DNA from: Ruditapes philippinarum
Taxonomy: Eukaryota
Reading direction: 5' to 3'
Assembly (NCBI RefSeq): GCF_026571515.1
Contig: NW_026861419.1
Location: 124,001 to 188,000, forward strand
DNA length: 64,000 nt
Shown one piece after another: positions 3,238-47,960 of the stretch (position 1 is its first letter; every line of letters starts with the position of its first letter). The notes under the pieces were generated by a model that saw only the letters and a list, made by a program, of their open reading frames with translations, was not told the DNA's origin and ran no database searches. A program made the translations under genes and the position numbers.

Positions 3238-3822
3238 ATGCCATTTGACATTTACAATAAAGAGTTTCAAAATTGGTTAAAAGGTGTATTTGGACTAAAC
3301 GCAACAAGAACTGCATTATGTGAATGTATTTCAGATAAACTGAATACCGTTTTAAGCAAAATGTTCTCCAATGAGGAATTACACCAATATTTTTTGTGTT
3401 TAAAAGCAAACAATATATCACTGTTGAAAACAACAACAAAAAAAGATCAACGGGAAAAAGAATCGAAATCAAAGGGATCTAAAAAATCGAAATCAAAAGG
3501 ATCAAAAGATAAAAGATGGGAATGTGAACATGATAGGTGTCGGGAACTTATGCAATATTTTATTGACAACCATCAACAAAAAGTACATTTACATTACACA
3601 TGGGCGCTGCTAGGAAAGTCAAAACGTACTGTCACAGCAGGTGATGGCTATCCTTGCAAAGAGTTAAAATGGAATGTTATCAAGCTATATATGCACATTG
3701 AAAAAGAAGATGTTATAAAACAATGTTCCAGTTTAGACTGTCTCGATATAACGCATGTTATCAAAATCATAAGAAATTGTAAACTTATAGCTACGGATGG
3801 CTCCGATGAACCTTTAGAAAAG
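3238..3822 (+). CDS. Coding exon 1: N-terminal part of CXorf38/DUF4559-like domain (195 aa)
   Basis: Acceptor TTTAG ends 3215, donor AAG|GTAAAT at 3823 (phase 0). Motifs EFQNWLK, C-x4-C..NH..W, WNVIKLYM, DCLDITHVIKIIRNC parallel CXorf38 as I recall it (EYKNWVK, WEVAKAFM, ECDAVALLSLINSC). Confidence 0.85.
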
Positions 3823-47566: not shown

Positions 47567-47960
47567 GATTGACAAGACTTGGAGTATGGGGGCACCCGTG
47601 TCCTATGGACACATTTCAAGTATATATATTGAAATAAGAAAAAATAATTTGAAAAACACGTTGGCAAAATATTGCTTTGGTCAGAGTTATACCCTTTGAA
47701 CTTAATTGAATTGTTGAAGTTGGATTTAAGGGGTTGAGAAGAAGAGCAAGAGATAAAGGTGATGGCCTAAGAGCACATTCCTAGTAGCTTGTTGTCTATG
47801 CCATGTTTCCCACATACATTCCTTGTATATTTTTCCATCTTTTGTATGTATCTTTTGTGATTTTTGTAATTGGCACAAAGTGTTTTTCTGTAAATTTCAG
47901 GACGCTGTTTCTAGCGAATACAGTCGTGTAATACTTGGAATGATTGGCGCAGGCTACTAG
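3238..47960 (+). CDS. Predicted 15-exon gene, 714 aa: CXorf38/DUF4559-like HEPN domain + coiled coil + divergent annexin core. join(3238..3822,5892..6047,6905..7087,10249..10431,10620..10724,28549..28630,31920..32014,34003..34116,35621..35711,36336..36415,37028..37084,39400..39571,40286..40344,41176..41298,47901..47960)
   Basis: All introns are GT..AG and phase-compatible; 2145 nt with no internal stop; in-frame TAA at 3226-3228 upstream of ATG 3238; TAG at 47958-47960. Exons 1-5 have no stop codon and exons 6-15 have no start upstream of the annexin core. The exon 5 to exon 6 splice is inferred. Confidence 0.7.
3832..5678 (+). mobile_element. Second copy of the same tandem-core element, about 9 units, in intron 1
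   Basis: Same termini and unit as 494..1785; the 3' 400 bp are nearly identical. Confidence 0.85.
5892..6047 (+). CDS. Coding exon 2: HEPN motif exon (VLDSRNQLMHSPNNKMTDSDTCNILQWTKKLLDCLDIAEKTYYNNAVQELQD)
   Basis: TTTCAG acceptor, GTAAGT donor, phase 0/0, 156 nt; R-N-x3-H at 5904-5921 resembles CXorf38 RNEIMHS. Confidence 0.88.
6360..6805 (-). repeat. Diverged, partial reverse copy of the hairpin-bearing element at 10800-11550
   Basis: 6725-6790 is the reverse complement of 10803-10866; 6600-6655 matches 11001-11050; 6363-6386 matches 11250-11270. Confidence 0.65.
6905..7087 (+). CDS. Coding exon 3: helical linker (LSENDFVLRYQ...LQDMLESIAALR)
   Basis: Polypyrimidine tract + TAAG acceptor, GTATGT donor, open 183 nt, phase 0/0. 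Confidence 0.8.
7925..10143 (+). mobile_element. 5'-truncated, decayed L1/Tx1-clade LINE (RT + C-terminal zinc finger)
   Basis: Frameshifted motifs GFIKNRFIG, LDFRYAFDTI, RGLRQGCGIS, QLADDTT, GGLNMID, CVLCNCTDSTEHFYIHC; A-rich tail near 10128-10143. Confidence 0.88.
10249..10431 (+). CDS. Coding exon 4: charged helical segment (STTNTRLEMKLSKYK...KREVKKAI)
   Basis: TTTAG acceptor, GTATGT donor, open 183 nt, phase 0/0; in frame with ORF 10267..10479. Confidence 0.8.
10620..10724 (+). CDS. Coding exon 5: coiled coil (KQMQKLEPEEMADEIKKLRKENESLKCENEQYNTA)
   Basis: TAG acceptor after pyrimidine tract, GCG|GTAAGT donor, phase 0/0; heptad pattern I-x2-L-x6-L. Confidence 0.82.
10800..11550 (+). mobile_element. 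Non-autonomous element with a 150-bp imperfect hairpin (possibly Crypton-type)
   Basis: Arms at about 10802-10866 and 10888-10952 (ATATCGGT..ACCGGTTT..TTTTGATGCG / CGCATCAAAA..AAACCGGT..ACCGATAT). Family assignment is tentative. Confidence 0.5.
11799..12216 (-). mobile_element. Truncated tandem-core (HINE-type) element fragment
   Basis: AACAAGAG terminus; GACCTTGAACTTTGACC...AAGTTTGAA core unit. Confidence 0.5.
14100..14755 (-). pseudogene. TatD-family DNase/metallo-hydrolase pseudogene inside the Gypsy element
   Basis: Ordered TatD-like motifs across frameshifts: DSHFH, IAVGLHP, QHIQHYYLTG (for IHLHCFTG), YFGFT, LLD*DAPY (for LLETDAPY). Confidence 0.8.
16062..16207 (-). pseudogene. PHD finger at the C-terminus of the Gypsy integrase
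   Basis: EVYCICRKPQNG / KFMIMCKYCNEWLHGSCV / LEIDRYKCLACK gives C4-H-C3 across two frameshifts. Confidence 0.85.
18777..19125 (+). mobile_element. SINE 3' portion (same family as 26400-27110) inserted into the Gypsy RT
   Basis: GTGACACTTG..TTGTGGGCCTATTAA..CCTTTCCTTGTTGATCTTG shared with the other copies; interrupts RT. Confidence 0.8.
20890..23415 (-). mobile_element. BEL/Pao LTR retrotransposon 5' fragment (short LTR, PBS, gag, protease)
   Basis: DUF1759-type gag LPKLEMTSFSG..WVEFWDSFESAV..KFNYLKGKLTGEA; knuckles CRFCNKDHWSDEC and CVYC..HHRSLC; protease LLDSGS; FWNFES motif at the truncation; PBS-like TGGTGTCGTG at 23291-23300; TGTTGC..GCTAC segment 23415 to 23301. Confidence 0.88.
23445..23705 (-). 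mobile_element. SINE tail copy
   Basis: Reverse complement of the 18777-19125 family. Confidence 0.75.
25740..25970 (-). mobile_element. SINE partial copy
   Basis: ATTAATAGGCCCACAA..GACGAGAAAACA..CAAAGACATAC shared with 26820-26990. Confidence 0.7.
26400..27110 (-). mobile_element. MetaSINE-like element, interrupted at about 26440-26640
   Basis: Minus strand reads GTGAGATTTGGTGCATCATTAACTGGTTTAATCACCCC..GCCGCTTCAAGACAGCGC, resembling the Meta domain as I recall it, followed by the shared pyrimidine-rich tail. Confidence 0.65.
27760..28030 (+). mobile_element. SINE tail copy
   Basis: Same family; GGGGGTTGCGTTC..GAACGCCGCC..TTGTTGATCTT. Confidence 0.7.
28549..28630 (+). CDS. Coding exon 6: start of annexin core (QNGTLRQAAKFNAENDAIILSEAMKGL)
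   Basis: T-rich tract + CAG acceptor (phase 0), GTGAGT donor (phase 1); annexin GT...F.AE.DA..L..AMKG pattern. Confidence 0.92.
28915..29600 (+). mobile_element. Tandem-core element, about 155-bp units
   Basis: GCATATAGT..GTCCGTCC head; ATAACTCTGAAACTA unit at about 29105, 29262, 29415, 29571. Confidence 0.75.
30630..30885 (+). mobile_element. Decayed V-SINE (RUDI-like)
   Basis: GGTGGTTCTACTCAGGTGC..CCTCCACC..AAAGCTGGAAA matches the copy at 40723. Confidence 0.75.
31030..31185 (-). mobile_element. CORE-type SINE fragment
   Basis: GTTCCTGGAACCAAC..TCTTGTTAAAGGACACAAC..ACCACTTGACCA resembles a reversed tRNA head plus CORE domain. Confidence 0.5.
31920..32014 (+). CDS. Coding exon 7: annexin repeat 1 (NIDEKAIIDILANRTNNQRQDIEQKFKTCFGK)
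   Basis: 95 nt, a typical annexin exon size; TTTCAG/GTAAAA. Confidence 0.95.
32345..33484 (+). mobile_element. Complete pearl/HINE-type element, about 160-bp units
   Basis: TTTTAGCTCA..GGTGAGCT head, GTCC microsatellite, AAATTGGCCCCGCCCCAGG unit x4, CAGGTAAGCGA..GGCCCTCTTGTT end. Confidence 0.85.
34003..34116 (+). CDS. Coding exon 8: annexin repeat 1/2 (ALTEELKCKLGGKFKDVMIDLMWTPEEFDSYELKNAMT)
   Basis: 114 nt, typical annexin exon; CAG/GTAAAT. Confidence 0.95.
34881..35546 (+). mobile_element. Internally deleted Tc1/mariner element
   Basis: TIRs 34881-34913 / 35514-35544 followed by TA; transposase C-terminus LEQALHQEWPNLPQNRIKRFTGSMRRRVEAIIRAHGGYTRY* at about 35090-35240. Confidence 0.88.
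35621..35711 (+). CDS. Coding exon 9: annexin repeat 2 (GICTDRDAMIEILCSRNNAQIQKINEAYLR)
   Basis: 91 nt; TTTCAG/GTAAGT; IEILCSR motif. Confidence 0.95.
36336..36415 (+). CDS. Coding exon 10: annexin repeat 2 (MYKWRLEQDIINETSGHFKELMVSLAN)
   Basis: 80 nt; TTTCAG/GTAAGT; ETSGHF motif. Confidence 0.95.
36427..36474. repeat. (GTGC)n/(GC)n microsatellite
   Basis: Direct reading, just after the exon 10 donor. Confidence 0.9.
37028..37084 (+). CDS. Coding exon 11: annexin repeat 2-3 linker (GERMENQAVDMNKANSDAQ)
   Basis: 57 nt; TTTAG/GTATGT. Confidence 0.93.
37150..39005 (-). mobile_element. Decayed Penelope-like retroelement (RT + GIY-YIG), split by a HINE
   Basis: FDVVSLYTNI, GTIMGTKDAPTYA, KRYLDD, and CGLC...MDCTVKNVLYVLIYNGWNEFYI. 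Confidence 0.85.
37422..38175 (+). mobile_element. HINE-type element with alternating A/B units of about 144 bp
   Basis: AGCTCACCTG head, CAGGTGAGCGA end; AACACTCTAG-like marker at about 37499, 37645, 37785, 37931, 38076. Confidence 0.85.
39400..39571 (+). CDS. Coding exon 12: annexin repeat 3 (FLVQAEISKMGTEKSRMIEIMALQSYEQLRALFNEYTSISGRSIEMSEILDVEMLPV)
   Basis: 172 nt; CAG/GTGAGT; SYEQLRA.F.EY motif. Confidence 0.92.
40286..40344 (+). CDS. Coding exon 13: annexin repeat 3-4 (IECVRHRPGYFAKKIYKSMK)
   Basis: 59 nt; CAG/GTTTGT; PGYFA..IY.SMK motif. Confidence 0.95.
40723..41010 (+). mobile_element. Full-length tRNA-derived V-SINE (RUDI-like)
   Basis: A box TGGTCGAGTGATTAAG, B box GGTTCGACTCC, TGAAATAATGCACG core, A-rich tail. 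Confidence 0.85.
41176..41298 (+). CDS. Coding exon 14: annexin repeat 4 ([41 protein letters not shown])
   Basis: 123 nt; CAG/[19 protein letters not shown] motif. Confidence 0.95.
43240..47565 (+). mobile_element. 5'-truncated L2/CR1-group LINE with frameshifted ORF2 and (ATT)n tail
   Basis: PKWFT, KATGLD, NYRPI, QSGFR, FLDLQNAFDLVDH, GVPQGSILGP, YADD, WNSIP; AATAAAG(TTA)n at 47524-47566. Confidence 0.92.
45805..47400. mobile_element. Non-autonomous TIR DNA transposon (Sola1-like), 1596 bp
   Basis: Perfect 27-bp TIR CGATGGCTCAGCGCAATACTGGTCTAA; ATAT on both flanks (45801-45804, 47401-47404); subterminal GAGTTAGAC repeats. Superfamily inferred from the 4-bp AWWT target. Confidence 0.85.
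47901..47960 (+). CDS. Coding exon 15: annexin C-terminus (DAVSSEYSRVILGMIGAGY*)
   Basis: TTTCAG acceptor phase 0; aligns to DTSGDY..LL.L; TAG stop; AATAAA at 48162-48167 is a candidate polyA signal. Confidence 0.88.
   Translation, partial: DAVSSEYSRVILGMIGAGY

Follow-up and report, generated by a model that had tools for sequence, protein, structure and literature searches.

Does the HEPN gene on a contig of the Manila clam, Ruditapes philippinarum, end where its closest paralogs end, or does it continue into the annexin exons that follow it on the same strand? We examined this question in a 64,000-nucleotide (nt) stretch (G000:C9906:124001-188000), hereafter the window, in whose numbering all unprefixed positions are given. 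A copy of a HEPN-coiled-coil (HEPN-CC) gene lies 17.8 kb upstream of a partial annexin duplicate. The explanation that we prefer, and to which we give an even chance of being correct, is that the two form one young chimeric gene, confined to the lineage of the Manila clam. Transcription from the HEPN promoter would yield RNAs that use a derived donor after exon 5 (10724) and are then spliced to the first true internal acceptor downstream, that of annexin exon A1 (28549), possibly through an 18-codon relic exon (26501-26554). This would give a protein of 714 amino acids (aa), or 732 aa, composed of a HEPN ribonuclease (RNase) domain, a coiled coil and an annexin core. The annexin part would serve either as a remodelled binding or oligomerising module or as a mere C-terminal extension, and the frame of such an extension would stay open since any premature stop would expose the full transcript to nonsense-mediated decay. 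Fusion is supported by an annexin that is truncated yet kept, a derived donor in compatible phase, a lost stop context and the foreign C-terminal domains found in this HEPN family. The splice between the halves, the activity of the RNase domain and the function of the annexin part are inferred from the genomic sequence.

Exons were searched singly, and the joined 714-aa model was assembled locally only, for frame checks, estimation of nonsynonymous and synonymous divergence (dN and dS) and comparison with the annexin paralog described below. The initial annotation had described five open phase-0 exons running from an ATG at 3238 to a donor (GCG/GTAAGT) at 10724/10725, ten annexin exons entered through a phase-0 acceptor at 28549 without an in-frame start, and an uninterrupted join of the two sets. 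This gene structure was confirmed. The upstream exons are stop-free, phase 0-0 and flanked by AG and GT, and encode 404 aa; the ten annexin exons (28549-47960), all likewise flanked by AG and GT, encode 310 aa and a stop, and the splice sites and phase are compatible with a join of 404 + 310 = 714 aa. A later AG, which would start exon 3 at 6938, was ruled out, as paralogs keep the segment LSENDFVLRYQ, encoded from 6905; only the start at 6905 therefore brings the sum to 714 aa. An in-frame TGA stands immediately 5' of 28549, and the first in-frame ATG of exon A1 is that of Met24. Because of this TGA, exon A1 requires a phase-0 partner. Phase 0 is found in all HEPN-CC introns and likewise in the annexin tail-to-core intron. 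Agreement of phase between the two halves is by itself a 1-in-3 chance event, and we regard preservation of the annexin frame as the stronger non-chance signal.

The downstream half had been interpreted as a C-terminal annexin core without a start of its own. The domain searches agree, and the core has four annexin repeats: five exons taken singly (A2, A4, A5, A7 and A9) exceed the Pfam annexin cut-off (35-47 bits or an expectation value (E) of 7e-5 against PF00191), and exon A7 matches annexins in PDB at E 4e-13. A complete canonical paralog of the annexin A7/A11-like type (C3094:119933-133925) matches this core in colinear order through all ten exons; it is the nearest annexin in the genome and has an allelic twin on contig C11224. 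The two genes share the same ten core exons and phases, 73% aa identity, colinear introns and the 3' flank. By contrast, the C3094 gene keeps its start, its tail, the GxGT loops in repeats 1, 2 and 4 and KRWGT in repeat 3, all of which the window copy has lost. Ahead of its core exons, the C3094 gene has a tail exon that is long, rich in Gly, Pro and Tyr and stop-free for 146 codons. At the DNA level, the window matches C3094 colinearly over 26501-51526; this homology begins inside the tail exon, the last ~20 codons of which survive in the window within an open stretch (26456-26554). The 64-kb window contains neither the remainder of the parent tail nor its ATG and upstream region. Since homology starts inside the tail exon and the rest of the tail is missing, the window annexin is, on this comparison, a 5'-truncated duplicate of the C3094 annexin, without the ancestral promoter, the ATG and most of the tail. 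The spacer between the two halves had been described as containing only transposon debris. Broken retroelement pieces are indeed present, but the relic of the annexin tail exon (26456-26554) lies there too.

The window annexin has changed rapidly with its reading frame kept. Against C3094 (73% protein identity), pairwise dN was 0.156 and dS 0.275, giving a dN/dS of 0.57. With three outgroup annexins of the same genome, 54 aa changes were assigned to the window branch and 9 to the parent's branch, with 22 undecided; the window annexin changed about six times faster than its parent, and by a rough reckoning the dN/dS of its branch would be near 1. There are no stops and no frameshifts, all ten exons are open, the intron-end splice dinucleotides are intact (18/18), and the one indel in 930 nt of annexin coding sequence is in frame. 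In colinear non-coding DNA, mismatches amount to 18.6% and gaps open 2.4 times per 100 nt. At that rate a single branch should have gained about 11 indels over 930 nt, and the chance that none of them would be out of frame is ~5e-4; in simulated neutral decay, the chance of no stop was 0.005-0.05. The rough joint chance of an intact annexin under neutrality is 1e-7 to 1e-6, or ~3e-4 when only the six most diverged exons are used. Divergence is uneven among exons (28% in A7; 5-9% in A4, A6, A9 and A10), which may partly result from gene conversion. The annexin frame seems to have been kept by selection, and its exons seem to be translated now, or to have been until very recently, from a borrowed start. 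Translation needs such a start because the frame is kept and the copy's own start is lost. Near-neutral residue change combined with a strictly kept frame fits a set of exons inside a longer mRNA.

The N-terminal module had been assigned to the CXorf38/DUF4559 type of HEPN domain, with an R-x4-H motif followed by a coiled coil; matches to paralogs and an intact RNQLMH motif bear this out. A phmmer search with exon 1 matched the R. philippinarum protein P0001, a PF15112 member, at E 5.9e-79 and returned 20 representatives, a small family. The longer members of this family exceed the PF15112 cut-off (27 bits): P0001, P0003, P0007, P0009, P0015 and P0019 score 32.8-52.5 bits. Window exons scored singly reach 13.3 and 17.9 bits (17.9 for exon 2), under the 27-bit cut-off, and the HEPN-CC module is 65% identical to P0022, which itself carries PF15112. 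RNQLMH occupies protein residues 200-205, in a column that reads RNxxMHS in the paralogs aligned in full. At 3517-3573, the Cys/His insert WECEHDRC...FIDNH carries the pattern W-x-C-x-H-x2-C...N-H conserved in the family consensus, and the window protein would by this pattern possess the Zn-ribbon-like insert of the PF15112 HEPN family. We regard its RNase activity as putative. Between the window HEPN module and the paralog on contig C13115, dN/dS is 0.57 and dS 0.255. An AlphaFold2 model of the paralog P0025 (mean predicted local distance difference test score, 89.1) is confident and mostly helical, with long helices at the end and short strands at the Cys/His insert. Foldseek found no match to this model in PDB at E <= 0.001. 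In VIA-align, the list of matches was filled by a helical hairpin (residues 235-303), and the N-terminal domain was barely probed. Exon 1 also encodes a 23-residue Lys/Ser-rich insertion (3439-3507; KKDQREKESKSKGSKKSKSKGSK) that is missing from all aligned paralogs.

Anantharaman et al. (2013, PMC3710099) placed CXorf38 among the HEPN families, with a Zn ribbon lying within the domain; they predicted the family to be active and proposed that it serves in animal defence through fusion to a variety of partner domains. The clam family resembles this description in its R-x4-H motif, in the Cys/His-rich insert within a helical domain and in its varied fusion partners. It differs in that the taxon list of that study has no molluscs and an annexin partner is not described there; the annexin link in the window is itself a prediction.

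Comparison with paralogs points to a changed donor at the end of exon 5. The paralog on C13115 (LOC132726320, encoding P0025 and P0022) and its exon-5 duplicate read GAGTTAAGT at the columns where the window has GCGGTAAGT. A single base, T in the paralog and in the exon-5 duplicate and G in the window, creates GCG/GTAAGT in phase 0, and by this alignment the window exon-5 donor is a derived consensus site. Homology to the HEPN paralog loci stops at ~10793. The ancestral polyadenylation (polyA) hexamer now reads ATTAAA at 10764, 52 nt ahead of the first in-frame stop at 10821. PolyA cleavage usually takes place 10-30 nt past the hexamer. Cleavage at the usual distance would thus come before 10821 and would likely leave the transcript without a stop.

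LOC132726320 and LOC132713529 (P0001) resemble the window gene in having five exons all in phase 0, the motif and the coiled coil. The window protein is 65-67% identical to these paralogs overall and 80% identical to P0001 in exon 1. By contrast, the paralogs end directly after the exon-5 equivalent or earlier, with no annexin on their contigs. Among relatives, the HEPN-CC module, judging from the models, often has something else after it: OGFr_N in P0021 and, in more distant members, Roc-COR (P0015) or a metallo-beta-lactamase fold (Lactamase_B_2, P0012). P0021 and P0003 have extra coiled-coil exons, followed in P0021 by OGFr_N, and in the P0021 gene (LOC132736653) the exon-5 equivalent is internal and phase 0-0. 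With its internal exon 5, additional exons and foreign C-terminal domain, LOC132736653 has the type of architecture that we propose for the window; it differs in reaching OGFr_N through a longer coiled coil and in being an annotated model, unlike the annexin fusion. The window spacer contained none of the downstream exons of the longer relatives P0021, P0003 and P0009. Several R. philippinarum models named 'opioid growth factor receptor-like' (P0021, P0023 and P0027) have the HEPN-CC module, or parts of it, before OGFr_N, and G000:C1855 has two tandem copies of the HEPN-CC exon set. In the paralog on contig C9330, the exon 4 equivalent (locus positions 12832-13021) is 190 nt long versus 183 and its frame is shifted, in keeping with the shortness of the P0001 model (316 aa) and with decay of its coiled-coil part.

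Chimeric genes such as jingwei of Drosophila arose by partial duplication and exon capture. The window would resemble genes of this type in that a truncated duplicate recruits upstream exons in compatible phase and then changes fast. The fusion transcript was demonstrated there, whereas here it is deduced from genomic sequence.

The alternative that survives best, which we consider a serious possibility though one that we do not favour, is that the window holds two separate neighbours. The HEPN-CC gene would end after exon 5, by read-through to 10821 or with a cryptic terminal exon, and the annexin, having gained a promoter and a short ATG-bearing first exon out of the transposon-rich spacer, would be a stand-alone protein poor in Ca2+ sites. 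Several observations favour this arrangement and weigh against fusion. The closest annotated paralog ends directly after its exon-5 equivalent: P0025 (isoform X1 of LOC132726320) reads through the donor-homologous site and stops 15 codons on, where a TAA overlaps AATAAA. The tail of P0025 has a homologous counterpart in the window, where a 32-codon read-through with the stop at 10821 and an AATAAA at 10930 could end the gene likewise. The spacer also contains sense-strand retroelement pieces, several polyA hexamers and, between 10900 and 28540, eight mini-exons of ordinary quality that run from an ATG to a phase-0 donor, any of which would make a new annexin first exon possible. Many annexins have very short first coding exons that are invisible to sequence alone. 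The other isoform of the paralog gene, P0022 (isoform X2), ends NNAE-stop, which fits a phase-2 splice (GA/GTTAAGT) onto a tandem exon-5 duplicate to give GA+G followed by TAA. The last exon of this paralog has been duplicated twice in tandem downstream (G000:C13115:65500-65652, 71642-71770 and 81921-82049), and a splice onto the first duplicate (GAG TAA) would explain the ending of RefSeq isoform X2.

Transcript and protein searches add to the points on this side. We placed reads from four runs, picked by exon 1 and mostly presumed to be RNA, on positions 6900-12899. One X2 contig joins 10431 to 10620 (exon 4 to exon 5) with GT..AG ends; the HEPN gene thus undergoes splicing and has low expression, a point that speaks for the fusion. 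Within the same region and runs, neither reads nor contigs cover 10670-10724, and no loose end occurs at 10724; in the raw RNA run X21, 0 reads fall over exons 3-5. Heavy read depth at 10.7-12.3 kb comes from repeats. Four protein searches, started from exon 1, from P0003, from residues 1-300 of P0021 and from a profile that had the window exons as separate rows, returned no protein combining PF15112 and PF00191, but these searches were weak (length limits, and low-complexity words that exhausted the limit of 8000 candidates); they also failed to return the window's own product, two of them missed P0022 and P0025, and their blanks carry little weight. No other contig of the genome pairs the two families, so that neither the fused protein nor a second locus with the pairing was found, and no publication describing a HEPN-annexin protein or the architecture of clam annexins was found.

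Two separate genes would, however, require that a promoter and a phase-compatible start exon had arisen anew, and would leave unexplained both the derived donor at 10724 and the loss of the stop before the ancestral polyA site. An annexin made on its own, with residues changing near-neutrally and the Ca2+ loops lost, would be expected to decay, yet the frame is strictly kept.

What the annexin part would contribute to a chimeric gene is a further question. Membrane binding by the annexin had been proposed to cluster the RNase domain. This proposal is weakened by the state of the Ca2+ loops: repeats 1, 2 and 4 have a changed Gly-x-Gly-Thr, and repeat 3 has another residue in place of its Trp. 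The parental loops GFGT, GIGT, RWGT and GAGT correspond in the window to GLNI in repeat 1 (where the cap Glu is also changed to Lys), GICT in repeat 2, K-M-G-T in repeat 3 (Trp to Met) and DAST in repeat 4. The window annexin thus lacks type II Ca2+ sites as defined by Gly-x-Gly-Thr and an acidic cap ~38 residues on. Canonical Ca2+-dependent membrane binding is unlikely on this evidence, as is a role of the annexin part as a Ca2+ or membrane sensor. Because the canonical loops are gone, RNase clustering driven by Ca2+ and membranes is not favoured. The vertebrate annexins ANXA9 and ANXA10 have degenerate type II sites as well. They resemble the window annexin in retaining the core fold with the Ca2+ loops lost, and differ in being stand-alone genes with their own starts. 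A more elaborate version of the chimera, in which an active HEPN RNase and coiled coil are joined to an annexin whose Ca2+ loops were remodelled under selection into a ligand- or pathogen-sensing module (a decoy or a sensor), seems to us doubtful.

An improbable alternative is that the annexin is a dead or dying partial duplicate, untranslated or riding along as 3' exons with a leftover open frame, and that HEPN-CC alone is functional. About six times more residue changes than in the parent, a branch dN/dS near 1, altered loops and the missing start would all fit this view, and the higher identity at A4, A6, A9 and A10 reaches into the flanking introns, so that gene conversion rather than selection is possible there. 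On a neutrally decaying branch, however, 3-5 stops and 3-4 splice-site hits would be expected besides the ~11 indels, and no gene-breaking change was seen. We rejected a pure pseudogene on the basis of the preserved frame, the indel pattern and the splice sites. An assembly misjoin within 10725-28548, placing two unlinked loci on one contig, is very improbable: the spacer is repeat-rich and the assembly fragmented (1.41 Gb in 15,874 contigs), but the window has no N or obvious break, each homology block stops where a gene naturally ends, the two having no end point in common, and no data indicate a misjoin.

If a single chimeric gene is encoded here, the HEPN-coiled-coil-annexin protein would be a new pairing, and if the annexin acts as a sensor, annexins would join the sensor domains on HEPN effectors in animal innate immunity. 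In bivalves (this genome and relatives), the module has been modelled with OGFr_N, Roc-COR and a metallo-beta-lactamase fold. To our knowledge, almost no CXorf38-type HEPN protein has been studied at the bench. The locus still shows its history: the parent annexin, the position of the break within the tail exon, the relic of that exon, the altered donor base and the lost context of the stop are all readable, which would make it a clean case of the capture of a truncated duplicate by its neighbour. If the halves are separate, the window holds an ordinary fast-changing HEPN paralog beside an odd annexin without Ca2+ sites. The coordinates of all features are given in Table 1.

Table 1. Exons and other features of the HEPN-CC and annexin halves (window positions)
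Feature	Position	Strand	Description
HEPN whole-gene copy block	2286-10793	+	homologous to paralog loci C13115 and C9330; ends at ancestral polyA region
HEPN exon 1	3238-3822	+	195 aa; ATG, first HEPN helices, Lys/Ser-rich insertion, Cys/His insert; GTAAAT donor
HEPN exon 2	5892-6047	+	52 aa; R-x4-H motif RNQLMH at 5904-5921
HEPN exon 3	6905-7087	+	61 aa; helical, coiled-coil start; acceptor 6904/6905; tblastn matches of P0001, P0021 and P0025 begin at 6896-6905
HEPN exon 4	10249-10431	+	61 aa; coiled coil
HEPN exon 5	10620-10724	+	35 aa; coiled coil; phase-0 end at GCG/GTAAGT
Read-through tail	10725-10823	+	32 codons; ATTAAA 10764-10769; first in-frame stop TAA 10821-10823; homologous to the end of paralog isoform X1
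Putative intron or intergenic spacer	10725-28548	+	17.8 kb; broken LTR-retroelement pieces on both strands, MITE-like sequence at ~10800-10975, relic exon
Relic annexin tail exon	26456-26554	+	33 open codons, no ATG; phase-0 donor AGG/GTAAGT; weak phase-0 AG at 26500/26501
Duplicated annexin-gene block	26501-51526	+	colinear with G000:C3094:120317-135885; enlarged here by insertions
Annexin A1	28549-28630	+	start of repeat 1; strong pyrimidine-rich phase-0 acceptor; no start codon; 70% identity to C3094 120921-121002
Annexin A2	31920-32014	+	Pfam 35.4 bits; repeat 1 loop GLNI (parent GFGT)
Annexin A3	34003-34116	+	from C3094 colinearity
Annexin A4	35621-35711	+	Pfam 36.9 bits; repeat 2 loop GICT (parent GIGT)
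Annexin A5	36336-36415	+	from Pfam annexin scan
Annexin A6	37028-37084	+	19 aa; 95% identity to parent
Annexin A7	39400-39571	+	repeat 3; fastest-changing; 28% nt divergence; in-frame 18-nt deletion; KMGT (parent RWGT)
Annexin A8	40286-40344	+	from C3094 comparison
Annexin A9	41176-41298	+	repeat 4; 47.5 bits; 88% identity to C3094; loop DAST (parent GAGT)
Annexin A10	47901-47960	+	ends in stop TAG

Other repeats accompany both halves. In the spacer, pieces of long terminal repeat (LTR) retroelements lie at 22125-22574 (-), 21194-21493 (-) and 18493-19446 (+), with a gag-like DUF1759 match (E 2.9e-23) and a protease-like stretch on the minus strand; stretches resembling reverse transcriptase on the plus strand were judged by eye, with no Pfam hit. 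Sequences resembling miniature inverted-repeat transposable elements (MITEs) occur at 10800-10975 and 6700-6790, and neighbouring repeats at 11100-12300 are covered very deeply by each of the four runs, with word depths in the tens of thousands at 12100-12299; this points to an abundant, transcribed repeat family. HEPN intron 1 contains a short TTCCGTCA repeat (3880-3936) and a tandem array (4536-5274) of 4.6 copies of a 162-nt unit with 81% matches. A GTGC/GCGT-type microsatellite (36420-36475) begins four bases past the donor of annexin A5, and the last annexin intron harbours, in sense orientation, a reverse transcriptase (RVT_1) of the long interspersed nuclear element type (43376-45515, +) in open pieces of 166 and 322 aa.

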